Positions 7,119 through 53,797 are shown, counted from the stretch's first letter. The stretch: DNA of 64,000 nt from Macrostomum lignano (GCA_002269645.1 NIVC01002396.1:1-64000); one strand, 5' to 3'. The notes: generated from the sequence alone by a model not told the origin. Numbers and translations are program-made.

Positions 7119-7134
7119 TAGAAATGAGATGCCA

Positions 7135-12932: not shown

Positions 12933-13428
12933 ACACCGGTTTAAATAAAAAAACATCCTGATTTTAAATCGAATATAAATAAAGAACTCCATTGCTCTCA
13001 AGTGTTACTGAATTATTAGTTAAAGCCATCAATAGCGCCATATCAGTAATTGTATTCCGGTTATGCAAAATACAAATTAATTTCTTTTATTATATTTTAC
13101 TGTTAATGCTTCAATAAACATAAATTTAGCATGGCATAGTGTAATAGAGGTTATAACACAACCAGGGGCCACTGCTATTTAGCAAAGAGCAGAAATATAA
13201 TTATATAACACCCAAGCAAGAGTCAGAAGCAACGCATCCAATCAAAGTTTGAACAGAGAAGAACAAAGGAAATAACAGATAAACAGCTACGCAAGGACAG
13301 AGTATCAGCACTATGATGAAGAAGCTATGCAAACCGGACAGCATCTGCTTTAGAGAAGAAATGAAACAGATCGTAAAAAATATATGCTTGACGACAAGAT
13401 AAAAAGAATAACTTAGGAAACAAAACTA

Positions 13429-14586
13429 TTGGAACTGGGATGCTGAAGCTATGGAATTGGGATGGTGAAGTTGTGGAACTGGGATGCTGAAGCTATGGAA
13501 TTGGGATGGTGAAGTTGTGGAACTGGGATGCTGAAGCTATGGAATTGGGATGGTGAAGTTGTGGAACTGGGATGCTGAAGCTATGGAATTGGGATGGTGA
13601 AGTTGTGGAACTGGGATGCTGAAGCTATGGAATTGGGATGGTGAAGTTGTGGAACTGGGATGCTGAAGCTATGGAATTGGGATGGTGAAGTTGTGGAACT
13701 GGGATGCTGAAGCTATGGAATTGGGATGGTGAAGATGTGGAACTGGGATGCTGAAGCTATGGAATTGGGATGGTGAAGTTGTGGAACTGGGATGCTGAAG
13801 CTATGGAATTGGGATGGTGAAGATGTGGAACTGGGATGCTGAAGCTATGGAATTGGGATGGTGAAGATGTGGAACTGGGATGCTGAAGCTATGGAATTGG
13901 GATGGTGAAGTTGTGGAACTGGGATGCTGAAGCTATGGAATTGGGATGGTGAAGATGTGGAACTGGGATGCTGAAGCTATGGAACTGGGATGGTGAAGTT
14001 GTGGAACCGGGATGCTGAAGCTATGGAATTGGGATGGTGAAGTTGTGGAACTGGGATGTTGAAGTTATGGAACTGGGATGCTGGGTTTATGGAACTGGGA
14101 TGCTGGGTTTATGGAACTGGGATGCTGGGTTTATGGAACTGGGATGTTGAAGTTATGGAACTGGGATGCTGGGTTTATGGAACTGGGATGCTGGGTTTAT
14201 GGAACTGGGATGCTGGGTTTATGGAACTGGGATTCTGAAGTTATGGAACTGGGATTCTGAGATTATGGAAATGGGATTCTGAAGTTATGGAACTGGGATG
14301 CTGGGGTTATGGAACTGGGATTCTGAGATTATGGAACTGGGATTTTGAAGTTATGGAACTGGGATTCTGAAGTTATGGAACTGGGATTCTGAGATTATGG
14401 AACTGGGATTCTGAAGTTATGGAACTGGGGTGCTGAAGCTATAGAACTGGGATTCTGAAGCTATGGAACTGGGATGCTGAAGCTATGGAACTGGGATTCT
14501 GAAGTTATGGAACTGGGGTGCTGAAGCTATAGAACTGGGATTCTGAAGCTATGGAACTGGGATGCTGAAGCTATGGAACTGGGATT
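13429..14586 (+). repeat. Minisatellite, 22 bp monomer / 44 bp dimer (GGAACTGGGATGCTGAAGCTAT)
   Basis: The first half alternates two monomer variants; the second half has drifted variants. Confidence 0.93.
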
Positions 14587-15000
14587 CCTAAAGTTTTAAA
14601 TAAAAATCTAGTTTAACAGCACAGCAGGGGTAAAGCATAGAAGTGAGAAAAACACAAGCAGCTCTCAATTGTATAAGCATTAACAGCAGAGTCTGACTAG
14701 CCAAATATAGTGACGGCTTTAAAAGATTAAAAAAAGAAGTGGTTAATTAATAGAAGATCATAGCCGGCAATAGATAGGAATGCGCTCTTTCACTAATAGT
14801 GCATCGCCAATAAAATTTGTTCTAGAATGTCAGACACATGAGAGCTCTAGGCCACATTGCCCTAAGATTGTGAATTAAAATTATATATAATTAATAAACA
14901 GTTTATGATATGACTATTAATTTAGTTTATGTTAGAAAAGTATTTTTATCATAATTTAGAAACTAGGCTTTTTCTTAACCTTGGAGACATTATTTAAACT

Positions 15001-16235
15001 AATTGAACTGGACCGCACATTGTGTCTCTCTCTGAATTGAACTCATTGGACTGGACCGCATCATTGTGTCTCTCTGAATTGAACTAATTGAACTGGACCG
15101 CACATTGTGTCTCTCTCTGAATTGAACTAATTGAACTGGACCGCATCATTGTGTCTCTCTCTGAATTGAACTAATTGAACTGGACCGCATCATTGTGTCT
15201 CTCTCTGAATTGAACTAATTGGACTGGACCGCATCATTGTGTCTCTCTGAATTGAACTAATTGGACTGGACCGCATCATTGTGTCTCTCTGAATTGAACT
15301 AATTGAACTGGACCGCATCATTGTGTCTCTCTCTGAATTGAACTAATTGAACTGGACCGCATCATTGTGTCTCTCTCTGAATTGAACTAATTGAACTGGA
15401 CCGCATCATTGTGTCTCTCTCTGAATTGAACTAATTGGACTGGACCGCATCATTGTGTCTCTCTCTGAATTGAACTAATTGAACTGGACCGCATCATTGT
15501 GTCTCTCTGAATTGAACTAATTGAACTGGACCGCACATTGTGTCTCTCTCTGAATTGAACTAATTGAACTGGACCGCATCATTGTGTCTCTCTCTGAATT
15601 GAACTAATTGAACTGGACCGCATCATTGTGTCTCTCTCTGAATTGAACTAATTGGACTGGACCGCATCATTGTGTCTCTCTGAATTGAACTAATTGGACT
15701 GGACCGCATCATTGTGTCTCTCTGAATTGAACTAATTGAACTGGACCGCATCATTGTGTCTCTCTCTGAATTGAACTAATTGAACTGGACCGCATCATTG
15801 TGTCTCTCTCTGAATTGAACTAATTGAACTGGACCGCATCATTGTGTCTCTCTCTGAATTGAACTAATTGGACTGGACCGCATCATTGTGTCTCTCTCTG
15901 AATTGAACTAATTGAACTGGACCGCATCATTGTGTCTCTCTCTGAATTGAACTAATTGGACTGGACCGCATCATTGTGTCTCTCTGAATTGAACTAATTG
16001 AACTGGACCGCATCATTGTGTCTCTCTCTGAATTGAACTAATTGGACTGGACCGCATCATTGTGTCTCTCTGAATTGAACTAATTGAACTGGACCGCACA
16101 TTGTGTCTCTCTCTGAATTGAACTAATTGAACTGGACCGCATCATTGTGTCTCTCTGAATTGAACTAATTGAACTGGACCGCATCATTGTGTCTCTCTGA
16201 ATTGAACTAATTGAACTGGACCGCATCATTGTGTC
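15001..16235 (+). repeat. Minisatellite, 44-46 bp unit (GAATTGAACTAATTGAACTGGACCGCATCATTGTGTCTCTCTCT)
   Basis: About 27 tandem copies just downstream of the ALG5 stop. Confidence 0.94.
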
Positions 16236-16321
16236 TGGTGCAACCCAAGCCATTAGCAAATGAGCAGAATATCCCCTACTTACGCAATAAGCACAGAGTC
16301 TCAAAGAACCCAAAGCTCCCG

Positions 16322-18944
<2,623 letters not shown>

Positions 18945-23206: not shown

Positions 23207-24526
23207 CGAGGGCTGCTTAATAAGTTCGCGGAAAACCAAACTTATCTTCAAGCGAATCAAACAAAATTTTATGAACTTTTTCCTTCAGATATTGGCACCT
23301 TTCACACAAATTTTCAGCCAGTTTGGCCAAAATGTTGCGACACAGTGGCCGAATAAGTGATGAAACCCCCGCTCCAGTGCTGCGCCTGACTGAGCGCGAC
23401 AGGCGAGTCGCAATTCTGGTCCAATTCCGGCTTGGCCTGTCTGCCTCCGAATGCTTGCAGACACTTCAAAAGGCCCTTGAGAGTGAAGCCCCATCCCAGA
23501 CGATGGTGTACAAGTGGTTCGGTCGATTCCGCTCTGGCTGTCTGGAGCTGGACGATGATGAACATGAAGGCCGTCCAAATTCGTCCATCTCGGACACGAC
23601 TGTGGCCAGTGTCCGAAAGCTGCTCGATGCAGACCGCCGAGTGACGATTCGGGAAATTGAAAAACATGTCGGGATTTCGGATTCAAGCGTCATTACTATC
23701 TTGCACGATCACCTCGGCATGAGGAAGGTGTCAGCTCGCTGGGTCCCTCATCAACTGAAGCCGGCTCAGATGCAGGCCCGCGTGGATTTTGCGAATTTCA
23801 TGCTCGACAAGTTCGACGCAGGCGCCTTAAATTTGGTGGACGGCATCCTCACAGGTGATGAAACGTGGGTGTACTTTTATGATCCCGAGACAAAAGTACA
23901 GAGCAAGCAGTGGGTCGCCTTTGAGGAGGATTCGCCCTTGAAATTTCGTCGCGAGCGAAGCGTCGGCAAAGTGATGGCTGCGGTGTTTTTCCGTCGGTGC
24001 GGAATTCTGCCTCCCTTTTTGCTCGAGGAGGGAGCCACAGTGACTGGCAGCTGGTACTCCAGTGTCTGCCTGCCGCAGGAGCTGGAATTCCTGCGTCGAG
24101 AGCGGCCAAAGACCAGAGATCGCGGCATTTTCCTGCACCACGACAACGCGCCCGCTCACAGAGCCAGTGTCACGCAGCAGTTCTTGGCATCAACTGAGCT
24201 GACTCTGCTGCCGCATCCGGCCTACTCGCCCGACCTCGCGCCTGCAGACTTCTTTCTCTTTCCGAAGATCAAGAAAAATCTGAAGGGGAAGCGCTTCGAC
24301 ACTCGTGAGGAGCTGGAACAGGCGTTGAATGCGGAGCTGAAAGCCGTCACAAAGGCGGAATTGAGGGACTGCTTTGCGGCGTGGTTTCATCGGATGAAGA
24401 AATGCGTTGATCTGGCTGGGGACTATGTTGAGAAGTGCCATTAGGTTGGGCTAAGTGTGTGCAAAATACTACGACTGTGCGATAACTATAAGTATGTTTT
24501 TCCACGAACTTATTAAGCAGCCCTCG
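23207..24526 (+). mobile_element. Complete mariner (Tc1/mariner DD34D) element, 1320 bp
   Basis: TIRs CGAGGGCTGCTTAATAAGTTCG[C/T]GGAAAA at both ends (one mismatch); TA at 23205-23206 and 24527-24528. Confidence 0.95.
23332..24444 (+). CDS. Mariner transposase, intact
   Basis: HTH region, WVPHQL, TGDETW, HDNAPAH, YSPDLAPAD. Counted 34 residues between the second and third D. First ATG at 23332. Confidence 0.93.
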   Translation: MLRHSGRISDETPAPVLRLTERDRRVAILVQFRLGLSASECLQTLQKALESEAPSQTMVYKWFGRFRSGCLELDDDEHEGRPNSSISDTTVASVRKLLDADRRVTIREIEKHVGISDSSVITILHDHLGMRKVSARWVPHQLKPAQMQARVDFANFMLDKFDAGALNLVDGILTGDETWVYFYDPETKVQSKQWVAFEEDSPLKFRRERSVGKVMAAVFFRRCGILPPFLLEEGATVTGSWYSSVCLPQELEFLRRERPKTRDRGIFLHHDNAPAHRASVTQQFLASTELTLLPHPAYSPDLAPADFFLFPKIKKNLKGKRFDTREELEQALNAELKAVTKAELRDCFAAWFHRMKKCVDLAGDYVEKCH

Positions 24527-28746: not shown

Positions 28747-30574
28747 AACATTGACATTGACATTTGCTTAGATCAGTAGATCACTAAGTATATAATAAAT
28801 ATATAGGCCTAATAATAATAATATTATTCATTACAAAATTAATCATTAAATATGACAATTAGACAGTAATAAAATGTTGCTAGGGGCCTAAATTTGATTT
28901 TGACCATGGAGTTGTAGAGAATCAGTTGAGTCTGGCTAATATATAAAATAATTCATTAAAAATTACTAGGTTAGGAAATCCGCGAGGGGCATATAGCTAA
29001 GTATAGACCATAGTTTTTTATTAAAAAATAAGAATAAATGAACGGTGATTGATAAAAGAAAAAAATTAACTAATATATATATATGATAATTCGTATGACT
29101 TGATTTCTATGGCACGCATTTTTAAAGAACGAAAAATGACGTGTTTGTTTCGCAGAAAGCAGTCTTCAAATTTCCGTTTCGTGAGGAAAATTTTCAAACC
29201 TTTATTTTTTGTAAATTATAACATTTCGTGCCTGTACTAGACAACTAGTATAAATCAGAAACTTATAATTGACGGATATTAGAATCCTATAGGTATGGTT
29301 ATACATTAAAATTATGTTTTTGTTTGGAGCAGTAAAAATAAGAGACTATCACAATTTATACACGCAAATTTTGCAGTAATCATCAGCAGAAAACTGACTT
29401 TAAACTGATTAAAAATTATAGGGCATTACATGCACATAAAATTTCAAACCAATTGAGTTTTCAATCCGCATGGGAAAATTATTTAATAAAGCAAAAAACA
29501 AGTCAGCCGTAACAATGCACAAAATGCAGAACATGAGCAGCTCTCTGATCTTGGATTCTATAGTTTTAGAAGGCCTTACCTTTCCTACATTTAGATGTAT
29601 AGTTTTACGTGTACATCGCATTACCTGCTACGCTTTCATATGTTATATTATAGAGATATATGATGTGTAAAAGCATGGTGCAACAAAATGAAATAAGAAT
29701 GGCGTTTACATGAGCAACAGCGCTTGTTTCTTTTGGTAAAATGGTGTAATATCGATTCGCTAGTTCATGCATCTAAGGTGCTACTTTTAGTAGGAAGTGA
29801 AAGTATTTTTTAATTAAAGTTTTACTCAATTGCTGCAACTATGCAGAAGCTGCTGTAGTAGAACATGATTAGAGAATACCCAGAATTGCTTTTGTTTATT
29901 GTGCAATCGTATCTTGAAAAGATTCAGAAATCGAACGGTAGAATAAAATTAGCGTACAGTGAACCCCATTCTATGGGATTCCGGATTAGATCACCCCCAT
30001 GTTTACTCATAGTTATTTTTTTAAACTACTTTTTTAGTCGAAAACTCCATTACTGCGTGGCTGTGTTATAACAACAGATCTGATATATTCTGCGGTTTTA
30101 CAAGTCCCGGCCAGCTATTCCGTGCAGCACTGCATGATCTCGTGCAATGTTTTATTCTACCCTACTCTCCTTGCATGGATAAATCATGGATGAAGCATCC
30201 ATGATGCCATGTATGGATCATACCTGAACATGTATGGAGCCATACCTGATCATACATGGTTCCACGTAAACTTCATCCATGGTTACTTTCCATCCATGTA
30301 CATTGATGTATGATTTTAAATATAATTTTCCTTACTACACTACTGTTAGTAGAACGCAATGTTTGCGTAGGTTCATTTTAAAGCTGAAATTTTCTAAACA
30401 AATTCGGCAGCATCTTTAGTGCTGCTGAGAAATATGTTTCCATTCCCTTATAAATCACTTTCAAAACAAAAAAGTATCAGAACAAATACTTATGCAATTA
30501 AATGTAGAAGTAATTGAAAACTCGTATGATGACCATTTCGAGACTTATATTATTAATGATAATTAGGCATAATT

Positions 30575-31123
30575 CATTTCAAAGTACTGTAAGAAAAAAT
30601 AAGACAGCTCAGTCTCAGAGAGCTTTAAAATACAGAATGGACAGAATTTGACGCATTTCAAGGTACTGTAAGAAAAAATAAGACAGCTCAGAGAGCTTTA
30701 AAATACAGAATAGACAGAATTTGACGCATTTCAAGGTACTGTAAGAAAAAATAAAACAGCTCAGAGAGCTTTAAAATACAGAATAGACAGAATTTGACGC
30801 ATTTCAAGGTACTGTAAGAAAAAATAAAACAGCTCAGAGAGCTTTAAAATACAGAATAGACAGAATTTGACGCATTTCAAGGTACTGTAAGAAAAAATAA
30901 AACAGCTCAGAGAGCTTTAAAATACAGAATAGACAGAATTTGACGCATTTCAAGGTACTGTAAGAAAAATAAAACAGCTCAGAGAGCTTTAAGATACAGA
31001 ATAGACAGAATTTGACGCATTTCAAGGTACTGTAAGAAAAAATAAAACAGCTCAGAGAGCTTTAAGATACAGAATAGACAGAATTTGACGCATTTCAAGG
31101 TACTGTAAGAAAAAATAAAACAG
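30575..31123. repeat. 73-bp tandem array inside the EnSpm-like element
   Basis: About 7.5 copies of AGGTACTGTAAGAAAAAATAAAACAGCTCAGAGAGCTTTAAAATACAGAATAGACAGAATTTGACGCATTTCA. Confidence 0.92.
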
Positions 31124-31452
31124 TAAATTTTACTGAACAGTCAATAAATAGAATTAGCCGAATTCGGTACGCATTAAGGGCAAGGGCCGACTAATCCTTT
31201 ACGAAACGAAGTTAATGCTGCATTAGTCAATTATTTGCGCACAGAAACTTGGAGATTTTGAATATGGAGAGATCGGACAAAGAGAGGTAACGGTGGGAGT
31301 CTGAGAGGGAGGAAGTTGGGCATCTGGAAAGTTATTCTGATTCCCTGATGGTTTTATCTTGGTCATGGAGCATAATTTTATTTTCTGCCAGACTTTGCAG
31401 CATTAATAATAAAATAATCGGATCTAAGGTACGGACACATACTCGTACCTTT

Positions 31453-33753
31453 TTAATCATGTTCAAACTCTTTGAACAATGGCACAGCGCAATAACAGTC
31501 TTTGCTGAACGATTCTACTGGAACAGCGATGCAGGGTCGATCGACCTCTGAAAAATTAACTATACGTTCGCGTCTGGCCGATCTGGGCGCATTAGACAGG
31601 GATATCAATACAAAATTGAATGTCGAAGACTTTTTGAACATGGATTCCAGCAATGCTTTCCAATTAAGTAAATCGATGGGGAAAGTTGCTGCTGGTACTC
31701 GTAAAACAAAATCAAACAGCGAACCAATGGGATCCAAAATTTGCACTCGAATAGTATTAGGCTCGAGGAACTCTGCAATAGTGCAGATTTCGCCGGACTT
31801 CAATTGGCAAAGATGGTTAGAATTTTTCGACGCACAAGCTGAGCTTGTCGAGAAAAAATGTCCATTAAAATAAGCAAGTGAGTTTCGAAGAATACCATGT
31901 GGCCTGGATGGCTCTAAAGATATAGAGTTAACTGCATCCACTACAATAGAGTCCTTAACACAAGAAAAGTAGTGATGTAGCAACTTTTGAAACAAAAACT
32001 TGCGAACAAGCTGTGGGCCAAATGACACAGTTCCGCATAAGAACTTTTTGAACATGCCAATGGAGCTCTCAAATGCGAACATAGAATAATTAAATACAGG
32101 TCCGTACAATTCGTACTGTTCAGCCATATGCAAAAGCAGGTGGAAATTAAGGCGGAGTACTTTCGGTCCGAATATTTGCTGAGCATTGGAGATAAAAGCT
32201 TTGCATAGCTTTTCGATATCAGTCTTATTTGATTGGGGGCTATACAACATGTGATAAATAAGAACTAAATTAGTTAACAGCAGTTTCAATGGAAAATGCG
32301 AAATTCTCTGCAAAAACGTAGGAAGAAGAAAGTATAGCGCAAAGTTTTTAAAATGCTTTGCTTTCCAATCTGAAAAGCCTTTAAAATTTGTGTTGATTGT
32401 GATGCTAGAAGGAGTTATAGATTGACGAATACAATTAGATATGAAATCCATGCAATTAGCTGAGCAAAAATACAACTCGCGCCTGTTTGCAGGTAATGAC
32501 AGCTCTTCTAGTAGATACTTGGTGTGGCCTTCGAAAAAGCAGTGTAAACTGTCAATAGGATTGCAGCTGGGAAACGGAACATAGTCTAACAAGCAACTGC
32601 GCATCTTTACGCCAAAAACAGGCCGATTTCGAATTTGTGCGAGCCGACAGTGTTCAAGATGGGAAGATGGGTTTCTCAAAGGAAACAAGTAGCCTTCACC
32701 ATAGCGGAAGATCCAGTTTTTACCTTTCTCGGATACTTTAAAGCTCTCACCTGGGTGCAAGCACCTAGGACAGCTAAACGCACCATTGTACTGGTGAATG
32801 CAGAAGAGCTTAGCAAGAGCGGGCAAGTCACAAACAAAGAGTGTGTAATGGACATGAACGGTGTATTCCGAGAATATAAACTGTTTTGGCAAATTGTTCA
32901 TAATTTCAGACAGAAAAGACTGGAAATGCGGGACTGCCTTCGATGAAACAAGAGCAATTAGAATTAAATTTGCAAAGCGTTGACGGATGTAAACAGGAAG
33001 GTTTAGAAGTTGAGCCTGAAATGGCCAAAAGCTACTCTGAACAGATTCAAAAAAATTGGCGCCATCAGCTGAGATTAGAAGATGCAAGTGAAGCGACTTG
33101 CCAGAAGATAGGCTTAAGCCTTGTTCTTTAACTATTTTGGAATTCAAAACGTCTGTGTTTTTATCCTTTTGCAATTCTTGCTCATACTGCAGAATAGTTG
33201 AAGTGTGGCTGCTTAAGATAGTCCGCAGCTGTGGAACAATATTGAGCTGTGTCACAGCAACCTTTGACTTTGGGGAATGAACCTGACACTGGCTTTTGCA
33301 TTCTGGGCAAAAGCCAAATTCAGACACGTCACTATCATCAAGAGGGCAAGTATCTTGAATCAATGATTTGAGCAACTTGACGCTATTTGGAAGAGCTAGA
33401 GAATCTCTACTAAAAATAGAAAGTAGCTTCAGGAGTCTATCAAGAGCAGCCTCTGAAACTCCGGAAGTAATTGCCCACTGAAAAATCAGAGCCGCCTGCA
33501 CACTGGGATCTGAGATGGAAGCCAAATTCGCTAAGCTATCTGAACTCTCCTCAAGCACAGGCACAGCATTGTTTTCACCAATAAAAGTTTCCACAGCGTC
33601 AGGACAGCTGTGCGAGTGCGTTACACCGGCTTCGCTTGAAATTGAACTCCTATTACTTGTAGAAAAACTATTTGAGGGAGAAGAAATCGCCTGACAAGAG
33701 TAGGCTGAGTAATTAGTAGAAAGAGAGTGCTCAGATTCTGATTTACTAGACAT
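31453..33753 (-). CDS. EnSpm/CACTA-family (Tnp2-like) transposase, intact 766 aa
   Basis: LLISADGANFF (D1), FVCDLPALAK (D2), QYNGAFSCPRC, PIDSLHCFFEG (DxxH), LRLNFHLLLHM, SMFAFES (E). Single uninterrupted ORF. Confidence 0.9.
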   Translation of the reverse strand: MSSKSESEHSLSTNYSAYSCQAISSPSNSFSTSNRSSISSEAGVTHSHSCPDAVETFIGENNAVPVLEESSDSLANLASISDPSVQAALIFQWAITSGVSEAALDRLLKLLSIFSRDSLALPNSVKLLKSLIQDTCPLDDSDVSEFGFCPECKSQCQVHSPKSKVAVTQLNIVPQLRTILSSHTSTILQYEQELQKDKNTDVLNSKIVKEQGLSLSSGKSLHLHLLISADGANFFESVQSSFWPFQAQLLNLPVYIRQRFANLILIALVSSKAVPHFQSFLSEIMNNLPKQFIFSEYTVHVHYTLFVCDLPALAKLFCIHQYNGAFSCPRCLHPGESFKVSEKGKNWIFRYGEGYLFPLRNPSSHLEHCRLAQIRNRPVFGVKMRSCLLDYVPFPSCNPIDSLHCFFEGHTKYLLEELSLPANRRELYFCSANCMDFISNCIRQSITPSSITINTNFKGFSDWKAKHFKNFALYFLLPTFLQRISHFPLKLLLTNLVLIYHMLYSPQSNKTDIEKLCKAFISNAQQIFGPKVLRLNFHLLLHMAEQYELYGPVFNYSMFAFESSIGMFKKFLCGTVSFGPQLVRKFLFQKLLHHYFSCVKDSIVVDAVNSISLEPSRPHGILRNSLAYFNGHFFSTSSACASKNSNHLCQLKSGEICTIAEFLEPNTIRVQILDPIGSLFDFVLRVPAATFPIDLLNWKALLESMFKKSSTFNFVLISLSNAPRSARRERIVNFSEVDRPCIAVPVESFSKDCYCAVPLFKEFEHD

Positions 33754-33802
33754 AAAAATAGCAATTCAAATATTCAAAAGTTACTAGAATTTTTTCCGCA
33801 AT

Positions 33803-35753
33803 TCACGGTCCCATTCGCCTTGAGCGGGAAATGGAATCCCCTGACTCGGGTCCAGAAGCAGCAGTTGAAGTTCGCTTTCTCGCCCGTGTCTCCTCCCTGG
33901 CCAGCTGATTGAGATGGTCTCGTACAGACTTCCAGATTTCGTGGAAGTCGTAGCCAGATGTTCGATAGCACAATTGAAGCAAACCTGAAAATTCACGAGT
34001 ATAGTAAAATATTTTTACAATAGACATTGTGTACTGTGTTTATAGTAGAAATAGGCTAAATTTAAAAGGAAGTTGATTTATGATGCTAATCATTAAATAG
34101 GTCAATGGGATGTATTGAACTTTAGAACTATTTTTCCTCAATTTCTTTTATCTCAGACCTAAATGTGTTTTTTTAGAAAATATCCCAAGTATTGGATTCA
34201 GATCATTTAGCATTAATTAGCCTAAATTGCTTTATAATAAAAAAATTGCACAAAACTGTGAAAAAATTATATATATATATTTACGTTGAAACTCTGTCAC
34301 ATGCTCAGATGGAGCAGGCCTTCGGGAACTGCGAGCACCACAGGATGAATCGATTATATGCTCAAGCAAGTAGCCTTCGCCAAATCGCAGCTTGATATAC
34401 CTTCGGAGGAACACCTTAGGATCGTTGCAAAGAATTGAAGACAGCTCAGCTAGGGAACCATCAATGCACCTAAATTCCTAAAAAATGTTATTATATAGTA
34501 GAACTTTTATACTACAGACGTGATGCTGCTGATGCTAAGAAAAAACTGACATACCTCATTTTGGTATTCTTTAATTGTTAGCATTCCACCAAAGTTGTCA
34601 TCCTTTTTTAAAAGTCGGCATATCCTTGCAGCAAGACGCTTCTCAAGAGAAAGCAACTCGGATTGAATGAACAGTTTTAGATCTAGAGTAAGATATATGC
34701 TCATATATAAAAATATGGTGATTTTGATTTTTAATAATGTGATTGTATCATATTAAAAAAATAAAATTATACCTTTCATTGTTGCATCCGATTCACTGTT
34801 TACTATCTGTACCCCTCGGAGGGGTTGCACTTCTTGAATTGCACCTAGTGATAAAAAAGGCTTATTGCTACAAAAATATTGACTCATTTGGTATTTGGTT
34901 TTCAATTAGGTGTAATAGAATATACAAACTTGATTCCAAGAGGCCTGTGGCACGAGCTTGCTCATTTTCAACCAAAGATGCCTCTCTCTCAAATGCAGAA
35001 ATGGCTTTTTCTAAAAAATAATAATTAATCAAATAATACAACAAAAAAAACAAATTGCAAACAATTAATAGTTCATATATATTGCAGTTTTACCCATTGA
35101 TTGAGTAGCTGGTATCGCCAAATTTGGTTCGCCACTTTCACTATCCACTTCATAAAGCTCGTCAAGTAGTCCATGCTGATGACAACTAGAACTTGAAGCA
35201 ACCTGCTTTGAACTAGATGACCTTATTGTCCTTACATTTGCAATGCCAGCTTGGGGATCTTTCATTGCAAAAAGCTCAATAGCTTGGCTAATCAATGAAT
35301 CAGTATTTTCAGCCTCACTAACCAAGTTGGAAAGTTGGTTCATAGTTGAAGCCATTTGCCTTTCACTACCTTTTGCCACAAGTGTAGCAGAAAATAGTTT
35401 GCCATACATGCGTAAAAAGACTTTAGTCCCCTAAAATATAATTTAATAAAGTAATATTACATTTGTAGTTGGAATAATTTGTTTTAGAAACCATGTACTC
35501 AATAACAAAATATTATGCATATAAATCCAACTTAAAATCTTACTTGTGCAAGTTCCAACTTTTCATCATTAGTTATTGTACTTGGCCAATAGGGAGACCC
35601 AAATGCAATGGTCACATATTGCTCATCATGGCCAACATTGTGAAGAATAAAGCAGAAAAACAATGCTGAATTGTCATTTCCAAATTTAGAAGTACTTTTT
35701 GTCTGCTTTCGAAGAGGCCTAGAATTAGATGCACTTAATCCAATATCATCCAT
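33803..35753 (-). CDS. Seven-exon accessory gene of the EnSpm-like element; about 400 aa with a C-terminal BEN-like domain
   Basis: Exons 35753-35544, 35430-35094, 35010-34930, 34844-34773, 34682-34555, 34477-34285 and 33984-33803, all GT-AG, phases 0,1,1,1,0,1, total 1203 nt with no internal stop. The C-terminus FLRRYIKLRFGEGYLLEH...RRPAP...LLQLCY...EIWKSVRDHLNQLAREETRARKR follows the BEN helix pattern. Confidence 0.72.
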
Positions 35754-37189
35754 AACAATTTGTTCTGAAAAAGTTTCACAAGGAGATAAGGTTTGAAGAA
35801 TCAATCAAGAGGCCAATGACAAACCAATTAGAATTGTATATAAAAAAAATTTAATGTAGGGACCCTAGGCCCCTATGATTTTAAATAAAAATTATAATAT
35901 AAGGCCTAGGCCCTATATATAGGCCTATAATTATAAAGTTGTGCCATTGTGGATTTTCTGATACAAAGTAGACAATATTAGGCCTAATTGGGCCTAGTCT
36001 AGTCTAGTTTTGATTATAGACTGTATATTAGATACAAAGGACATGAAAGGTCTCGAAATTAAGTACCAATTACCATAATATACTATTATTTTTTATTATT
36101 TTGAAACTGTCAGCCTACCATGTGATTTTTATCATTAGGCTATGGCCTAGGTCTAGGATGCCACTTTAGACTAGGCCTTTGGCTTTGGTTAGGCCAACCT
36201 ATCATTATAAAAATGCAGCAAAATATCATTCAAAAATATACATCTAACCCCTATAGGTTATCTTTGCATCCCAAATATAATATATAATAGGGTTTCTATT
36301 TTCTAATATATCTACAAATACAATTTTCACTGAAGGAGTGAAGATCAAAATTAGCATGTCAAAAAACCTTACAAGCCACCGAATTTTAAAACTAGCTACC
36401 AAAAGTGGAACTGGAAGTATATAGCTAAGAAAAAACATAAACATAAACATAGCACATAGTGACACATAATGAAATGATGACAACATGCAAGAGTGACAGA
36501 GTCCTCTTAGAAAGGAAAAATAGGCCTAGTAATTTATGTTTATGGGAAGTTAAGTCCGTAATTAACTAAACCGAAACAAAATGGCCAACAAAATTGCTGG
36601 TAATATATTCAAAGCAATTTGTAGGTGAAGATTTTAACAAATTTATTAAACTATTTTTTGTATTTACAATTTCGCTTTTATTAAATATATTTAAAACTTT
36701 ATTAGATATACATAAAATAGCCTGAAATTTTTTATAAGCTTAGTTATTTATTTTCCCGTATGAACTCCCTGACATGGATGATTTTACCATGGAAAGTTTT
36801 AAAAATCCATGCATGAAAATACCATGAACATGCATGATTTATCAATGGATCATGGATCATAGATGATTTATCCATGATAAGAGAGTAGGGTAATTGCGTT
36901 TTACAATGAATCTGACGTGCAATTTTATCCGTGATTAAATGATCATGACATTCGTAGCCAAGACATTTACGCACTCAAAACTAAATTGATTAATAAGCGA
37001 TGCGATCCAGATATGTTTTTGCAGGTGGTATGACATTTTTATAGTTGCTACGGTATATTAGATACAAGCATCTCTGATTGTTTACTCATTGTTCTGCCCT
37101 GAGAGGCGTTTTTAAAACCAAAATTTTCACAAGTTTTAAGAAAATTTTACCACTTAAAAACTTCACAAATTTTGGGAGAGTGAAATTTT

Positions 37190-38180
37190 GGACTTTTGAA
37201 ATTTAAGGCTTGTGAAGTTTCGAGATCGTGAAGTTTCGGGATCGTGAAGTTTCGGGATTGTGAAGTTTCGGGATTGTGAAGTTTCGGGATGGTGAAGTTT
37301 CAGGATTGTGAAGTTTCGGACTTGTGAAGTTTCGGGATGGTGAAGTTTCGGGGTTTTGAAGTTACGGGCTTGTGAAGTTTCGAACTCGTAAAGTTTTGGG
37401 ATTGTGAAGTTTCGGGATTGTGACTTTCGGGATTGTGAAGTTTCGGGATCGTGAAGTTTCGGGATGGTGAAGTTTCGGGATTGTGAAGTTTCGGGATGGT
37501 GAAGTTTCGGGATTGTGAAGTTTCGGACTTGTGAAGTTTCGGGATGGTGAAGTTTCGGGGTTTTGAAGTTACGGGCTTGTGAAGTTTCGAACTTGTAAAG
37601 TTTTGGGATTGTGAAGTTTCGGGATTGTGACTTTCGGGATTGTGAAGTTTCGGGATCGTGAAGTTTCGGGATGGTGAAGTTTCGGGATTGTGAAGTTTCG
37701 GGATGGTGAAGTTTCGGTATTGTGAAGTTTCGGACTTGTGAAGTTTCGGGATGGTGAAGTTTCGGGATTTTGAAGTTACGGGCTTGTGAAGTTTCGAACT
37801 TGTAAAGTTTTGGGATTGTGAAGTTTCGGGATTGTGAAGTTTCGGGATGGTGAAGTTTCAGGATTGTGAAGTTTCAGGATTGTGAAGTTTCGGGATTGTG
37901 AAGTTTCGGCATTGTGAAGTTTCAGGATTGTGAAGTTTCGGACTTGTGAAGTTTCGGGATGGTGAAGTTTCGGACTTGTGAAGTTTCGGGATTTTGAAGT
38001 TACGGGCTTGTTAAGTTTCGAACTTGTAAAGTTTTGGGATCGTGAAGTTTCGGGATTGTGAAGTTTCGGGATTGTGAAGTTTCGGGATTGTGAAGTTTCA
38101 GGATTGTGAAGTTTCGGGATTGTGAAGTTTCAGGATTGTGAAGTTTCGGGATTGTGAAGTTTCGGGATGGTGAAATTTCA
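37190..38180. repeat. 16-bp satellite (GTGAAGTTTCGGGATT) with a higher-order repeat of about 207 bp
   Basis: The diagnostic variant block GG(G/A)TTTTGAAGTTACGG recurs at about 37351, 37558, 37765 and 37988. Confidence 0.9.
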
Positions 38181-42400: not shown

Positions 42401-42701
42401 TCTCCGCTCAATTTCATGTTATTATTTTTCTACCGAATCCCAGCGTTGCAAAAAAATATGCTGGTATATCTGGACTGGGGAATCTGCTTTACTTGAACTG
42501 ACCACTTGCGAAACCGTTCCGTAGCTTCGGCTGCATTGAAATAACATAAGGAAATTCGACTGAAAGTGATAGCTTTTCTCCCAGCTTAGGGGTATCGGCA
42601 TAGTGATGAGTCTTTTCTGTAATGACGCCAAATTAACGCCAGTTCTGAGTCATTTCCTTGAAATTTGCGTGAAAGTTAAGTTGGCTAGTGAGTTCGCATC
42701 A

Positions 42702-43245
42702 AGGCACATCAAGACACAACAAAGCACATCAAGACACATCAAGACACATTAAGACACATCAAGACACATCAAGGCACATCAAGGCACATCAAGGCACATC
42801 AAGCACATCAAGGCACATCAAGGCACATCAAGGCACATCAAGGCACATCAAGACACATCAAGGCACATCAAGAAACATCAAGGCACATCAAGACACATCA
42901 AGACACAACAAAGCACATCAAGACACATCAAGACACATTAAGACACATCAAGACACATCAAGGCACATCAAGGCACATCAAGGCACATCAAGACACATCA
43001 AGACACAACAAAGCACATCAAGACACATCAAGACACATTAAGACACATCAAGACACATCAAGGCACATCAAGGCACATCAAGGCACATCAAGACACATCA
43101 AGGCACATCAAGGCACATCAAGGCACATCAAGGCACATCAAGGCACATCAAGACACATTAAGACACATCAAGGCACATCAAGGCACATCAAGGCACATCA
43201 AGGCACATCAAGGCACATCAAGACACATCCATCAAGGCACATCAA
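42702..43245. repeat. 10-bp minisatellite (AG[G/A]CACATCA)
   Basis: About 54 tandem copies. Confidence 0.92.
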
Positions 43246-45248: not shown

Positions 45249-48200
45249 TCAGGGGGACCCGTCGGTCTCGCCTGCAGCGCGGTCCTCCTCACCGACGGTG
45301 GGGAAGAAATCAGCTCGTCCGGTGTCCCTGAGGTACCGGGCGAGCAGTGGGATGCTCTCGGGCCTGCAAACGTCGGAGAGAACCGGGTTTGGCCCGAGGT
45401 GAGTAAGCCTGGCCCTGGTGAAAACCGGGCAGTGGCAGATAAAATGCTCGGCGTTTTCACTGCCTGAGCGGCAGAAGGGGCACCGCTCCTCGGGTACTTG
45501 GCCCTGAAGGAAGCGGTGGCGAGAGAAGCAGCCATGCCCGGAGAGGGCCATGCTAACTGCTCTGAGGTCTCTGCGGTTGAGCCTGAGGAGGGCTCTACGC
45601 AGGAGAGGAGAGGGACAGGGGACGGCAGCACGGGATTGCCTACAATTCCGGGTGTCGTGCCACCTGCGGAGATGCTCGGAGTCAGCCCAGCGCTTAACGC
45701 GGGAATTGATCACCGAGGCGGGGATGGGGGCACCCGGGCCCGGCCCCAATAGCGCGCCGGCGGAGCCAGCCTTGGCCAGCAGGTCAGCGCGCTCGTTGCC
45801 GAGGAAGCCGGCGTGGCCCGGGATCCATCTGAGCTCCACCTGGTTGCCTAGCGCAAGCCCGTTGAGCTGGGTGTTGCAGTCCAGGACGGACCTGGAGCTG
45901 GCGGTGCTGCGGCAGAGGGCCCGAAGGGCTGCTTGGCTGTCAGAGTGAAAAATAAATTTCCGGCCGCTAAGCTGCCTTCGGCGCAGCTCTGCCGCGCAGG
46001 AGCTGATGGCAAGCACCTCGCTCTGAAAAACACTGGAGTTGAGCCCAGTGTGCTGGGAGTAGCTCCACACCACTTCTCCCTTGAAGAAGACGCAAGCTCC
46101 GAAGCCTGAAAGACCATGCCTCATAGAGCCGTCAGTGTAACAGTGGACTTCAGAGTCGCTCCAGCTGTCACTCGCCTCGTGTCGAGGCTGAATGGTGACC
46201 TTATACCTTTGGCTCAGGAGAAGGGTGGCTGGGATCGAGTCCGTGAGGATGTTGAGCCCGCCACACTCCTCGAGAGCCTTGAGGCAGAGGTCAGAGTGCG
46301 GGATAAGCGACCGCTTCTTAAAGGCCCGCACTTTCTTGAAGGCCACCCCAGCATCCAGAAGACGCCGGGTGCTCTTCGCCGCCTCTCCTTTGATATAAAT
46401 ATCCAAAGGAGGGGCGCAGAGGAAGGCATTCATGCCTTCAAAAGGAGTAGAGGGTGGAGCGCCCATAGTCATGCGGCAGGCTCTGCCCTGGATTTTGTAG
46501 AGAGCGTCGAGGTTGCTCTTGACGCTCAGGCCGCTAGCCCACACGAGGCTGGCGTAACTGATCGAGGGGCGGATGATGGCAGTGTAAATCCACCACAGCT
46601 TCCTGGGGGTGAGCCCCCAGGTGGTGCCCACGGCGCGCCTGATCTGAGCCAGTACAGCCAGGGCTTTTTTGGCTTTAGTTTGAATGTGCGGAGTCCAGTT
46701 AAGCCTGTGGTCCAGAGTGAGGCCCAGGCAGCGGACCTGCTTCTCCATGGAAATATTCTTTCCATAGAGGGTGAGGGGCTTAATGGTCCAGAGCAGTTTG
46801 TTGGTAAACATGACTGCTGTGGTTTTCGACTCTGAGAGTCTAAGGCCACATTGGTCTGCCCAACGCTCCGCTCGTCCCAGAAAGCCCTGCAGAAGGTCTC
46901 TGATGGTATCAACCGAGGGGCCCGCGCATATCGCGGTCACATCATCGGCATAGCCCACCTTGAGAATGGGGTCGTGGAGATCACTGCAAAGCAACTCATC
47001 CATGACCATGTTCCAGAGAACGGGGGTGAGAACGCCGCCCTGGGGGCCCCCTTTCAGGACAGGCACCGAAAGAGAGCTGCCGCTCAGGTGGGCCACAACA
47101 GTGCGGTTTCGGATCATGAACATGATCCACCGGACAAGGTGAGGGTGCGTGGCCCTGGATTCCAGGGCTCTGCAAAAGGCCTCGAAGATGACGTTGTCGA
47201 AGGCCCCCTCAATGTCCAGGAAAAGCGAGAGGGCAAAGCCGCTGCCAAGAACGGCCCTCTCCAGGAAGTCAACAATGACATGGAGAGCACTCTCGGTTGA
47301 CCTGCCCGCGCGGAAGGCGTGCTGGTTCTGCGAGAGTGGGAAGCGCTTCAGCTCGACCGAAAGTAGGCGCCAAAGCACCAGTCTCTCGAGGAGCTTGAGG
47401 CAGAAAGAAGTGAGGCTGATAGGCCTGAAGGCCTTCACCGATTGGTAGTCGCTCTTTCCAGGCTTGGGGATAAAGACCACCCGGGCCTCTCTCCATGCAA
47501 CTGGTACATAGCCCAGCTCCATACAAGCTCGAAGGAGACGACAGAGCAGGTCCAGGAAGCGGTGGTTTTTCACCGCCTCGTGCAAGAACGCTGGGTAGAT
47601 GCCGTCGGGCCCAGGCGCCTTGAACGGGTTAAAGGACCTTGCCGCTCTAATAATGCGGTCTTTGGTGATCATAGACTTTGCTAGGCCTTGCCCTCCCACT
47701 GTGTGGTCGGGCGGGCCCTGCTGAGTCGGAGATTTAGGGAAAAAACTGTTGAGCATGAGCTCTAGAGTCTCTTCCGAACTCTCTGTGACCGAGCCGTCAG
47801 GTCTCTTCACAACAGAGAGTTTAGAAAAACGGTCATTAGTGAGTGCCTTAACCACGCGGGCTACGGGGCGAGAGCCCTCAAGCCCTTCGCAATATTGGCG
47901 CCACTTGGCCGTCTTGGCCCTTCTGACTTGGCCCTTAAACTCGTGGATCGCACGGGTATAGGCCTCTCTGTCAGATGGGTCTTTGGTTTTGAGCGCTCGC
48001 CTTTGGAGGGTCCTGGCTCGGCGCCGAAGGGCCCCGAGCTCTGGGTTCCACCAGGGAGCAGATTTCTTGCCTTTATAGGCCTTTAGGGGGCAGGCTGCTT
48101 CAAAGGCAGTGGTGATCGCCCCGCCCAGGGAGGAGGCGAGATCGTCCACCACCTGGCAGTCAGAGAGGTCACTGGGGGGGTCAAGATCCCGAAGGCCGCG

Positions 48201-48953
48201 GCTCAGCTTCGAGCCAAAGGCGGCCCAATCGGTGTTTCTGACGTTCCGACTCCAAGTGACCTTAGGCTTTTGCTTGGTCGGCCCAATGCAAAAGCGGATA
48301 AAGCGGTGGTCCGAGAGCGAGTCCTCGTCCCACACTCGCCAGCCCGTAACTGCGGAAAGCAGTCCGGGTGAGGCGATGGTGGTGTCGATGACTTCGGCCC
48401 ACCGCCCATTATTGAACGTTGGTGCATTGCCCACGTTACAGAAGTTGAGGTTAGTGCTGCTGACATAGGCCAGCAGCTCCTCGCCTCTGCTATTGATGTT
48501 CTTGCTGCCCCAATGCAGGTGGTGTGCGTTCACATCCCCTGCAATGAGCAGCTCGAACCGATGGGACGCAGCATAGTCAGTAAGGTTGACTAACGCGTCG
48601 CAGACAACTGGGGCATCGCCCGGGAAATAGGCAGAAGCTACCAGCACAGGTTTATTGGGAATGAGGTTATTGATTTGAACAACACAGATGTCCCCAGTCG
48701 AGAGATCAGGTCTCATCCATGCCTCAAAAGCTTTTGCAGCAAAGACCAGAGATCTTGGGCGAGGCTGAGAGCCCGCCATGCAAAAACAGTGGTAGCCAGA
48801 TGGCACATTATTTGGCTTACCTTTAGTCATCCAGGGCTCCTGTACGAAGACCAGGCCCGGAAGCTGTTGCTCTGCCGTGCGCATCAGGTTGACCGACGCC
48901 GCCACGCAGTGCTGGGTGTTGATCTGCAGACACCAGGTAGTCGTTGGCATCAT
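45249..48953 (-). CDS. ORF2: APE endonuclease - reverse transcriptase - RNase H - CCHC finger, 1234 aa
   Basis: APE (LQINTQH, VFVQEPW, GDVNAHH, IDTT, LSDHRFI); RT (FRPISLTS, QHAFR, FLDIEGAFD, PQGGVLTP, GYADD); RNase H (YTDGS, VFQSEVLAI, SDSQAAL, WIPGH..GNERAD); CPFC...ENAEHFICHC. Confidence 0.95.
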   Translation of the reverse strand: MMPTTTWCLQINTQHCVAASVNLMRTAEQQLPGLVFVQEPWMTKGKPNNVPSGYHCFCMAGSQPRPRSLVFAAKAFEAWMRPDLSTGDICVVQINNLIPNKPVLVASAYFPGDAPVVCDALVNLTDYAASHRFELLIAGDVNAHHLHWGSKNINSRGEELLAYVSSTNLNFCNVGNAPTFNNGRWAEVIDTTIASPGLLSAVTGWRVWDEDSLSDHRFIRFCIGPTKQKPKVTWSRNVRNTDWAAFGSKLSRGLRDLDPPSDLSDCQVVDDLASSLGGAITTAFEAACPLKAYKGKKSAPWWNPELGALRRRARTLQRRALKTKDPSDREAYTRAIHEFKGQVRRAKTAKWRQYCEGLEGSRPVARVVKALTNDRFSKLSVVKRPDGSVTESSEETLELMLNSFFPKSPTQQGPPDHTVGGQGLAKSMITKDRIIRAARSFNPFKAPGPDGIYPAFLHEAVKNHRFLDLLCRLLRACMELGYVPVAWREARVVFIPKPGKSDYQSVKAFRPISLTSFCLKLLERLVLWRLLSVELKRFPLSQNQHAFRAGRSTESALHVIVDFLERAVLGSGFALSLFLDIEGAFDNVIFEAFCRALESRATHPHLVRWIMFMIRNRTVVAHLSGSSLSVPVLKGGPQGGVLTPVLWNMVMDELLCSDLHDPILKVGYADDVTAICAGPSVDTIRDLLQGFLGRAERWADQCGLRLSESKTTAVMFTNKLLWTIKPLTLYGKNISMEKQVRCLGLTLDHRLNWTPHIQTKAKKALAVLAQIRRAVGTTWGLTPRKLWWIYTAIIRPSISYASLVWASGLSVKSNLDALYKIQGRACRMTMGAPPSTPFEGMNAFLCAPPLDIYIKGEAAKSTRRLLDAGVAFKKVRAFKKRSLIPHSDLCLKALEECGGLNILTDSIPATLLLSQRYKVTIQPRHEASDSWSDSEVHCYTDGSMRHGLSGFGACVFFKGEVVWSYSQHTGLNSSVFQSEVLAISSCAAELRRRQLSGRKFIFHSDSQAALRALCRSTASSRSVLDCNTQLNGLALGNQVELRWIPGHAGFLGNERADLLAKAGSAGALLGPGPGAPIPASVINSRVKRWADSEHLRRWHDTRNCRQSRAAVPCPSPLLRRALLRLNRRDLRAVSMALSGHGCFSRHRFLQGQVPEERCPFCRSGSENAEHFICHCPVFTRARLTHLGPNPVLSDVCRPESIPLLARYLRDTGRADFFPTVGEEDRAAGETDGSP

Positions 48954-50665
48954 TGCAGATCGGATGTTGCAGCCGCCAGGAGTTCCTCCTCCTCCTCGGC
49001 GCTCACCGGCTTCGGGTCGGGGTCGCCGGTGTCCATGGGCTCTTCTTCAGCAAAAGGCCCCCGATTGGCCGGAAGGCAGTAGGCAGCGTTCGCCGCCCTT
49101 TGCCCACCATCCATGGGGTCCTCCGCCTCAGATTGGCCCAATGCCCTGGAGCAGCCAGCCGCCTGGGCAGGCGGGTCCGTCTCCAGTCGGCCCTGCCCCG
49201 AGGGGTTGGGCCCAGCTGGGACGTCCCCACCCTCCCTGGACGAACTGGTGCGCCTAGGCGTCCCGGCGACCTCTCGCCTCAGCTGGGAGATTTTGGCGGT
49301 ACGGACTGCCTCAGCTGCACGCTGGTACAGGCCGCGCCGCTTGGTGCTACGCGCCGGGCGTCGGTCGCCTCCGCCCTCAGCAGCGCGCTCAGCTTTGCCC
49401 GCGCGGCCGTGCTGCCGGGCAGGGCGGTTTGCTTTGGCAGTCTGAGCAGAGGCTTGCGCCTCGGCCCCGGCCGCCTCCGCATCCCGCCCGCCCTGCTCAC
49501 TGCCACGGGGAGGGTCGGCCTCGTAGGAGCGGATGCGCAGCTTCCAAAGGCCGACGTTGATGAAGCTGCCGTGTGGATAACGCCTCATCCAGGCGTCCGA
49601 CAGCCCCAGGATGGCTGTGAAGCCAGTGCCGTCGGTGCGCTTAAGGGTGTCATGCACCACTAGGCCCGCGGCGGGAAGCTCCCGGTTGACTGCTAGCAGT
49701 CCTTTCCGGAGCTCGTCAGCAGAGGTAACAACGCTCCTGGCCGGGACCCAGATTCGATGCCTCTTGGTCCGGGGGCGCTCGTCCTCTCTGCAGAAGGCTA
49801 GGTTGAGGTCCCAGCTCTGCTCGGGCAGCAGCTCAAGGAGCCGCCGACCCGAGTCAGCATCACTGGGCCAAATGAGAAGGCACGAGTCCCTCGTCGCATT
49901 CGAATGAATGTTCAGAGGCGTGCCCTTCAGAGTAAGCTTCCACAGGAGGCCATCAACGGCACTTCTCACCTGCTTCAGCTGATCGGGAGACAGGCGCGCG
50001 TCCTTTCCCAGGATGACAACCGCCGGTTGCCTCTTTGCCGCATCAGCGTAGGAGGCCCGGGGGTCAGTGGAGCTTTCTTCAGGTGGGCTGTCCACCCTCC
50101 CGGCTGCATCGGCCTCCCTATCCTGGGCAGGGGCTTCCGTGGGCTCGAGGCCCTCTTCCGCCACCGCCCCAGACTGGGAAGCTTCCGCTGCCGCGGGCCG
50201 TTGGCCCCTGGCACCGGTTTGGCTTCCGCCCTCCTTGGCCCGCCTCGCCTTGTTAAGTCGACGGCGGGCAGCTCCAGAGGTGGTGCTGCGTTTCTTAGCA
50301 GCTGGAGTAGCAGGTGTCTTCTCGGAGGCACCGCTCAGAGTTGGCTCCACGGGTCTCGCCGAGGCGTCCCCGATGGTAGCAGGTGGTATGGCCGAGGAGT
50401 CCACGGCCCCAGCCGAGGCCGGAGGCACTGTGTCATCCACAGCCGGTTTGTTACTTCGGTTAGAAGCCATTGGCTGGAAGTAAAAAGGTGGGACTTCCTG
50501 CAGAACACAGGCAAAGAGCCGCAAGGCCGCAACCCCAAACCAAGCGGCAGGCCCCCAAAAAGCAAAATACCACCCTGCGGGGGACCCAAAAGCGCAAGGG
50601 GAACCGTTAGCGACCAGACTACTCCCTGGCCAAGCGTCCATCAGCACGGAGTTACACTGGGACAT
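48950..50665 (-). CDS. ORF1 of the LOA-like element, 571 aa (DUF4780-like central domain)
   Basis: Long ORF 5' of ORF2. The central segment (LSPDQLKQVR...RIWVP...LLAVNREL...NVGLWKLRIR) resembles the ORF1 domain of LOA/R1 elements, with low-complexity flanks. Confidence 0.8.
   Translation of the reverse strand: MSQCNSVLMDAWPGSSLVANGSPCAFGSPAGWYFAFWGPAAWFGVAALRLFACVLQEVPPFYFQPMASNRSNKPAVDDTVPPASAGAVDSSAIPPATIGDASARPVEPTLSGASEKTPATPAAKKRSTTSGAARRRLNKARRAKEGGSQTGARGQRPAAAEASQSGAVAEEGLEPTEAPAQDREADAAGRVDSPPEESSTDPRASYADAAKRQPAVVILGKDARLSPDQLKQVRSAVDGLLWKLTLKGTPLNIHSNATRDSCLLIWPSDADSGRRLLELLPEQSWDLNLAFCREDERPRTKRHRIWVPARSVVTSADELRKGLLAVNRELPAAGLVVHDTLKRTDGTGFTAILGLSDAWMRRYPHGSFINVGLWKLRIRSYEADPPRGSEQGGRDAEAAGAEAQASAQTAKANRPARQHGRAGKAERAAEGGGDRRPARSTKRRGLYQRAAEAVRTAKISQLRREVAGTPRRTSSSREGGDVPAGPNPSGQGRLETDPPAQAAGCSRALGQSEAEDPMDGGQRAANAAYCLPANRGPFAEEEPMDTGDPDPKPVSAEEEEELLAAATSDLQ

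Positions 50666-53761: not shown

Positions 53762-53797
<36 letters not shown>

Follow-up and report, generated by a model that had tools for sequence, protein, structure and literature searches.

The 64,000-nucleotide stretch of Macrostomum lignano DNA examined here (GCA_002269645.1, NIVC01002396.1:1-64000; hereafter the window) carries at 30160-36890 a 6,731-bp DNA transposon of the CMC (CACTA/Mirage/Chapaev) type. The region was read on both strands. Two genes lie on the minus strand of the element: an intronless transposase open reading frame (ORF) of 766 aa at 31453-33753 and, upstream of it, a seven-exon gene for a second protein, here called the accessory protein. What is this second protein, and what might it do for the element?

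The element and its two genes

An inverted-repeat search sets the limits of the element. Two imperfect arms of 41 nt (30158-30198 and 36852-36892), 83% complementary, start CCCTACTCTC with TA outside both. The two TA dinucleotides (30158-30159 on the left flank, 36891-36892 on the right) are the target-site duplication, and the terminal inverted repeats (TIRs) proper occupy 30160-30198 at the 3' end and 36852-36890 at the 5' end, as seen from the element's genes. The termini read CCC...GGG and the TIR starts CCCTA. The 10-mer CCCTACTCTC occurs exactly twice within the 64-kb window, at the two element ends. Inside these limits lie a tandem array downstream of the transposase (30575-31123; 73-bp unit, 7.5 copies) and, upstream of the accessory gene, about 1.1 kb at 35754-36851 (minus strand), a stretch with no ORF that we presume to be promoter and leader.

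To which class does the element belong? A target-site duplication of 2-5 bp is expected of CMC transposons, and the window insertion has one of 2 bp, as have the six others that show both ends. CMC termini are 5'-CA...TG-3' ‘in most cases’ (PMC12730594); the CCC...GGG found here departs from that rule and matches the exception provided by the animal TRC elements. These SmTRC1-like elements combine a CCC core at the TIR ends with a 2-bp duplication (PMC1636069), and so does the window element. Plant En/Spm elements (CACTA sensu stricto) have CACTA termini and a 3-bp duplication, in place of which we found CCCTA and 2 bp. On the sequence of its ends, the window element clearly belongs to the animal branch of CMC transposons with CCC...GGG termini and 2-bp duplications (TRC/Mirage-like).

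The transposase agrees with the placement in the CMC superfamily, showing both a match to a curated transposase model and the catalytic residues. Pfam DUF1258 matches it at 1.2e-14 (54.9 bits, above the cut-off of 33.1), while the matches to DUF4218 (22.9 bits, cut-off 27) and Transposase_21 (17.7 bits, cut-off 28.6) fall below theirs. DUF1258 is a nematode family, which we take to correspond to relics of Mirage-type transposases. In an alignment of six transposases, comprising that of the window and five relatives 28-64% identical to it, residues D230, D309 and E562 are unchanged throughout, and so are those of C328-x2-C331 and H538-x3-H542. We therefore regard the window enzyme as a CMC transposase whose active site is, to judge from these residues, apparently intact.

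The accessory gene is counted from the ATG of exon 1 (35544-35753) and continues through exon 2 (35094-35430), exon 3 (34930-35010), exon 4 (34773-34844), exon 5 (34555-34682) and exon 6 (34285-34477) to exon 7 (33803-33984), which ends in a TGA stop at 33803-33805. The six introns, of 77-300 nt, are all GT...AG and have pyrimidine tracts. The spliced product is free of stops and exactly 400 aa long.

Is this gene real? To answer this we compared it with its counterparts in two diverged subfamilies of the same genome (loci L009 and L010), whose transposases are 62-63% identical to that of the window and in which, as here, an accessory gene lies directly upstream of the transposase. The nearest named relatives of the transposase are likewise M. 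lignano proteins, 62-63% identical. In the gene models rebuilt for L009 and L010 all seven exons are intact, the splice sites are canonical and the intron phases (0,1,1,1,0,1) are those of the window. The accessory proteins are 60-61% identical to the window protein, rising to 72-75% in exon 6 and 75-84% in exon 7; the short exon 4 is poorly conserved in sequence, and its position and phase are conserved. The subfamilies share no alignable nucleotide sequence beyond the ends, the exons and the transposase ORF; the non-coding 5' region stays unaligned, and the blocks end at the exon 6 donor and resume at the exon 7 acceptor. Between subfamilies the proportion of nonsynonymous differences (pN) over the gene is 0.24-0.26 against a synonymous proportion (pS) of about 0.70, at which synonymous sites are saturated; pN falls to 0.13-0.16 in the C-terminal third and is 0.14, against a pS of 0.75, over the BEN-like span described below. 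We conclude from these comparisons that the accessory gene is genuine, is borne by the element and is under strong purifying selection.

The accessory protein is built of a conserved beta-rich N-terminal domain, a variable middle that is probably disordered or coiled, and a strongly conserved helical C-terminal domain. The first of these (residues 30-125 or so; beta strands, then two helices) is encoded within 35266-35666, and the last (about residues 288-378; exons 6 and 7, with intron 6 between them) within 33872-34444. Against Pfam the protein matched no plant transposase-associated family, that of TnpA included. A sub-threshold match to Peptidase_C7, even weaker in the fragment P0006, was judged to be noise. 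That fragment, UniProt A0A1I8G9A9 (78 aa, M. lignano, ‘Transposase’), is a mis-spliced piece of an L009-type accessory gene, in which the end of exon 5 is joined to the inside of exon 6 before the frame reads into intron 6. Apart from it the accessory gene is without annotation.

How recently has the element moved? An identical transposase protein is encoded on eight contigs of GCA_002269645.1 (NIVC01...). The earlier note on this DNA had proposed a search of the genome for copies, and all eight other loci carry the element, 99.7-100% identical to the window copy. Their flanks are unrelated to one another and to those of the window, which is therefore a ninth insertion. The six copies with both ends visible are each flanked by a direct duplication of 2 bp, which is TA in three of them, TG in two and TC in one. 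At L008 an uninterrupted target repeat just upstream holds a single TC; it serves as an internal empty site and is the closest stand-in for confirming the 2-bp duplication. The copy number of the 73-bp array varies among insertions. The accessory coding sequence is intact in six of the eight other copies, five of them identical to the window and one with a single substitution, and the window copy and six of the eight others have both ORFs intact. Near-identical copies at different sites, with 2-bp duplications, therefore point to a young and probably active family. The pattern suggests a very recent burst, probably ongoing, and an element that is very likely autonomous.

Some copies differ in detail. 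L005 has an insertion of about 2.3 kb (1532-3829) between the 5' TIR and exon 1, at element position ~965-970, and the stretches fetched for L001 and L004 are without the first ~490 bp and ~1,950 bp of the element, respectively. Among the diverged subfamilies, the L009 element spans 4132-11388 and the 3' end of the L010 element lies at 11194; their termini read CCCTAGACTC, the form in which the window's end is kept there. The 5' end of L010 was looked for and not found. The L009 copy, the single one seen, is flanked on both sides by the same eight bases, CATGTACA (4124-4131 and 11389-11396), which may stem from a duplication of 8 bp or, alternatively, from one of 2 bp (CA) that fell within a local repeat of CATGTA.

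The earlier note had described this locus as a complete animal EnSpm/CMC-like transposon with CCC-terminated TIRs, a TA duplication, an intact 766-aa transposase with D/D/E motifs, and six scattered ORFs that splice, as seven exons, through GT-AG sites into a protein of about 400 aa. These structures were recovered where it had placed them. A complete animal CMC-type transposon it is; EnSpm is too specific a name for an element with neither CACTA ends nor a 3-bp duplication. The suggestion that the element may be autonomous gains from the at least nine insertions.

Relatives of the accessory protein

Does the accessory protein occur outside Macrostomum? A word-indexed search of 5.8 billion proteins returned no relative for the window protein alone and, for the family profile, only P0008. 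Exhaustive phmmer comparison with 1.84 billion representative proteins yielded seven relatives. Three of these (P0007, P0008 and P0010) are full-length, intronless homologues that are 20-23% identical and have both the N- and the C-terminal domain in common with the window protein.

What lies beside these genes? The neighbour of P0010, 2 kb upstream of it, is a transposase of 855 aa with 29% identity to that of the window (E 3e-55). P0007 begins 10 nt past the stop of an upstream ORF ending ...ELEHN, where the window transposase ends ...EFEHD; by eye we read this ORF as the C-terminal tail of a transposase, and BLAST found no similarity. P0004, another transposase relative (L016-18), is followed by accessory-like exons, and one BEN-like exon stops at an intron placed like intron 6 of the window. 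The relative at L014 gives weak matches to Plavaka and DUF1258, and no TIR was found for its element. The contig of P0008 (L011) ends too soon for a transposase next to the gene to be visible. Every accessory relative with sufficient context adjoins a homologous transposase. A host-gene context was recognisable for none of the three full-length relatives, and four fragment matches had no context or one that was not inspected. The order of the genes differs: the accessory gene precedes the transposase in the three Macrostomum subfamilies and follows it in the distant relatives (L014, 3412-9130; L012, 52-1780; L016, 1272-6280), two of which are intronless.

Since the accessory gene stands beside homologous transposases in distant lineages, the pairing must long predate the Macrostomum subfamilies. 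As judged from these loci, the gene travels with this clade of transposases in several deep lineages. The earlier note had held that an accessory gene occurring elsewhere without the TIRs and the transposase would point to a captured host gene; the relatives with context do the opposite.

Three further relatives (P0009, P0011 and P0012) are represented by single-exon fragments on short metagenome contigs. P0011 and P0009 continue past the donor positions of window introns 1 and 6 into non-homologous sequence, which suggests that intron positions are conserved beyond Macrostomum. A scan of metagenome loci gave 576 pattern matches, none of which was confirmed.

The C-terminal domain and a proposed role

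What kind of domain is conserved at the C terminus? We modelled the protein with AlphaFold from the alignment of the family. A single-sequence model of the 400-aa protein, with a predicted local distance difference test score (pLDDT) of 37, was not usable. The alignment-based model contains two confident domains, at residues 30-125 (pLDDT about 90) and at about 271-380 (mostly 77-93, with one 10-residue block at 66). When the model was compared by Foldseek with 350,542 chains of the Protein Data Bank (PDB), the best seven matches were all BEN domains, from BANP (three entries), Insensitive (Insv) and NACC1, with probabilities of 0.80-0.96, target-normalised template-modelling (TM) scores of 0.48-0.57 and, at best, a root-mean-square deviation of 3.3-3.4 Å over 86 columns. 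A hidden Markov model of the C-terminal domain, run against 177,635 PDB sequences, gave one credible match: the BEN domain of BEND6, at E=0.018, aligned over the whole domain. As a yardstick, BEND6 itself finds the BEN domain of Insv in the same database at no better than E=0.009. Among the Macrostomum subfamilies the BEN-like domains of L009 and L010 are 77-83% identical to that of the window. For the N-terminal domain, Foldseek returned weak Tudor-like fold matches and a profile search of the PDB sequences nothing credible. A viral structure library gave no meaningful match.

If the C-terminal domain binds DNA, where might it do so? The motif ATCCATG/CATGGAT has 16 matches in the 64 kb, of which 9 lie in the outer 140 bp or so at the two ends (binomial P = 6.5e-18): five in a subterminal cluster at 30174-30298 and four at the 5' end, at 36773-36876. 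It clusters at the ends of L009 and L010 as well. We regard these repeats, picked by their position, as candidate binding sites. A subterminal motif conserved together with a DNA-binding-like domain fits the recognition proposed below.

And how might the two genes be expressed? From the stop codon of the accessory gene to the ATG of the transposase the distance is 49 nt in the window (33754-33802, minus strand); in L009 it is 176 nt and in L010 it is 194 nt. The window spacer contains no poly(A) signal, the first AATAAA coming after the transposase stop codon. In-frame stops after exon 7 and ahead of the transposase ATG speak against simple read-through. About 15% of M. lignano genes lie in operons resolved by spliced-leader (SL) trans-splicing, in which genes are most often about 100 bp apart (PMC8629364). 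A short spacer without a poly(A) signal, in a species with such operons, therefore makes a single operon-like transcription unit plausible.

We propose the following cycle. Transcription would begin at the element's 5' end and cover both genes, perhaps in one operon-like unit. Through its BEN-like domain the accessory protein would recognise the CATGGAT repeats under both ends, and it would then recruit or position the transposase. The transposase would cut at the CCC termini and reinsert the element with a 2-bp staggered cut. In such a cycle the accessory protein would be a functional analogue, not a homologue, of TnpA of maize En/Spm and of the Myb-like protein of PIF/Harbinger.

What weighs against this reading? 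The splice junctions and the start codon of the accessory gene are predicted, as is the bicistronic transcript, and the binding of the CATGGAT repeats by the accessory protein, like its need in transposition, is a plausible proposal. L007 has a 1-nt indel that shifts the frame in exon 3, and L004 is without exons 1-3, so that not all copies are competent for both genes. Further points concern the BEN assignment. Pfam BEN (PF10523) matched neither the window protein nor six homologues nor the family consensus at any threshold up to E=10, while the BEND6 fragment used as a control matched it at 5e-16. The model was built on an alignment of just eight sequences and has a mean pLDDT of 65; the E-values of the Foldseek matches are only 0.28-0.6; the output of the fold search gives its matches without the query residue ranges of the aligned part; and hhalign gives probabilities of only 66% for BEND6 and 58% for BEND6 together with Insv. 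Could the domain then be an unrelated small helical one, its BEN matches reflecting the generic similarity of helical bundles? The silence of Pfam, fold matches with E above 0.1 and a shallow alignment would agree with this. Yet two independent approaches, by fold and by sequence profile, both rank BEN first among 350,542 chains and 177,635 sequences; four different BEN proteins are represented among the matches, which cover the whole domain; and BEND6 and Insv match each other at a comparable E-value. An unrelated helical domain seems to us rather unlikely, and the C-terminal domain is likely, on remote evidence drawn from a predicted model and a profile, to be a divergent BEN-type fold. The earlier note had called the last exons BEN-like and had proposed a structure search; that search did return BEN folds, and the BEND6 profile match points the same way, while the Pfam match that it also envisaged never appeared.

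A BEN-type domain need not imply a part in transposition. The BEN proteins among the PDB matches (BANP, Insv, NACC1 and BEND6) are transcription or chromatin factors, the weak Tudor-like matches of the N-terminal domain suggest a chromatin reader, and maize TnpA also regulates the promoter of its element (PMC1636069). The accessory protein might accordingly be a regulator (a repressor, a controller of copy number, or an anti-silencing or chromatin-targeting factor), with the transposase recognising the ends alone. We consider this unlikely: the motif clusters are symmetric at both ends, not confined to the promoter end, and the gene stays beside the transposase across deep lineages despite changes of order. 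The roles of regulator and cofactor are, moreover, not mutually exclusive. Might the two ORFs instead be one gene, alternative splicing of which gives a BEN-transposase fusion, much as a single En/Spm transcript gives rise to both TnpA and TnpD? The spacer is short enough and without a poly(A) signal, and both SmTRC1 and En/Spm yield multiple alternatively spliced products (PMC1636069). But in-frame stops separate exon 7 from the transposase ATG, in three subfamilies both ORFs keep a conserved ATG and stop of their own, and in distant lineages the two are separate ORFs in the order transposase, then accessory gene. An obligatory N-terminal fusion is therefore unlikely, and we think a spliced fusion of this kind improbable. 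The linkage in distant organisms, together with the changed order, argues strongly against such an obligatory fusion and also against a host gene captured by transduplication and without a role for the element. DNA transposons do take up host fragments, and a weak BEN-like match lies outside the L009 element; against capture stand the intact gene, its conserved introns, the strong purifying selection in three subfamilies, the homologues linked to homologous transposases, and a tally of just seven relatives among the 1.84 billion representative proteins, none of the full-length ones in a recognisable host-gene context. Capture is very improbable. The explanation that we prefer overall, with a probability of roughly 0.6, is a young two-gene CMC element in which the accessory BEN-like protein would be a TnpA-like partner of the transposase; the cofactor role is plausible.

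The weak BEN-like match just mentioned (L009 1551-1769, minus strand; E 0.028, 27% identity over 81 aa) lies about 2.4 kb outside the L009 element and under a called gene of 53 aa. It could represent either what is left of another element or a BEN-like gene in its own right.

Known systems and the rest of the window

How does the element compare with those already described? Its closest counterparts are SmTRC1 of Schistosoma mansoni and its relatives in Tribolium and Aedes, the CACTA-related animal elements described by DeMarco et al. in 2006 (PMC1636069). These share with the window element an animal host (a flatworm among them), a CACTA-related transposase, CCC core termini, a 2-bp duplication and an internal block of tandem repeats, and the Tribolium TRC TIR starts CCCTAG, as do the termini of L009 and L010 (PMC1636069). 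Several spliced transcripts of SmTRC1 encode proteins other than the transposase, PrA and PrB, which have no detectable relatives and no assigned domain and which the authors hypothesised to be analogues of TnpA (PMC1636069). The window element likewise has an extra spliced protein without a transposase domain, its splicing being predicted from the sequence. It differs in that its partner belongs to a family conserved across lineages and with a BEN-like domain, which sets it apart from PrA and PrB as these are described. The extra exons of SmTRC1 lie 3' of the transposase ORF, whereas the accessory gene lies 5' of it. We found no later paper settling the question, raised for SmTRC1 in 2006, of whether animal CACTA-like elements need a TnpA-like partner.

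With maize En/Spm the window element shares the CMC superfamily, by the motifs of the transposase, as well as two element proteins, an intron-rich second gene, short repeated motifs in both subterminal regions and, as proposed here, a division of labour between a DNA-binding partner and a DDE enzyme. The two differ in their termini and duplications (CACTA and 3 bp there, CCC and 2 bp here). In Pfam, nothing links the sequence of the accessory protein to the plant TnpA family, and alternative splicing of one transcript is proven for En/Spm, whereas two separate ORFs are predicted in the window. A place beside Mirage of Caenorhabditis elegans is suggested by DUF1258, the best Pfam match of the window transposase. 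Mirage is described in Repbase with 2-bp duplications, and we know of no second gene described for it. The best-studied two-protein case in animals and plants is PIF/Harbinger, in which a separately encoded Myb/SANT-like protein binds subterminal sites and recruits the transposase. The mechanism proposed for the window element is of this kind; PIF/Harbinger differs in having a transposase of an unrelated superfamily, a Myb/SANT and not a BEN-like partner, and a 3-bp duplication, TAA/TTA. The accessory protein resembles the BEN proteins Insensitive, BANP, NACC1 and BEND6 in the predicted fold of residues ~288-378 and in the full-length profile alignment with BEND6. It differs from them in that its domain is too divergent for PF10523, is encoded by a transposon and is joined to an N-terminal domain absent from those proteins.

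The type of element is thus known, and the family of its partner protein appears to be undescribed. A full-text search of the literature combining BEN domain and transposon found no such report, although absence there is no proof of novelty. What seems new is that the partner forms a conserved family, across subfamilies and distant organisms, with two foldable domains, one of them BEN-like. The locus offers a clean, intact, multi-copy example, and a candidate active DNA transposon, in a regeneration model, and it hints at a connection of mobile elements with BEN-type domains. With a conserved partner, two confidently modelled domains, one of them resembling a fold known for sequence-specific binding of DNA, and a candidate end motif, the question of the partner becomes directly testable. 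A wider generalisation is tentative: animal CCC-ended CMC transposons might be obligate two-protein systems, their partner being an unrecognised, widespread family that joins a beta-rich N-terminal domain to a divergent BEN-type domain reading CATGGAT repeats. If this were true, transposons would harbour a store of BEN-type DNA-binding modules, which might even have arisen there, and an active M. lignano family could offer this regeneration model a native transposon tool.

The window contains other repeats. A search against Rfam gave no matches. At 23323-24444 (plus strand) a 373-aa ORF with a Mos1-type helix-turn-helix (HTH) and a Tc1/mariner DDE transposase represents a second, unrelated DNA transposon. 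At 45249-50665 (minus strand) lies a retrotransposon without long terminal repeats (non-LTR), of the long interspersed nuclear element (LINE) type, with an intact 1,234-aa ORF2 that has endonuclease, reverse transcriptase and RNase H domains; its upstream 571-aa ORF has no Pfam match and overlaps ORF2 by 4 nt. Unrelated minisatellite arrays with periods of 10-54 bp occupy 5051-18593, 37210-38179, 42697-43229, 52613-55266 and 59330-61996, examples being a 15-bp unit in 178 copies (59330-61996) and a 24-bp unit in 46 (7135-8241). Between 2-kb bins the GC content of the window ranges from 28% to 70%.

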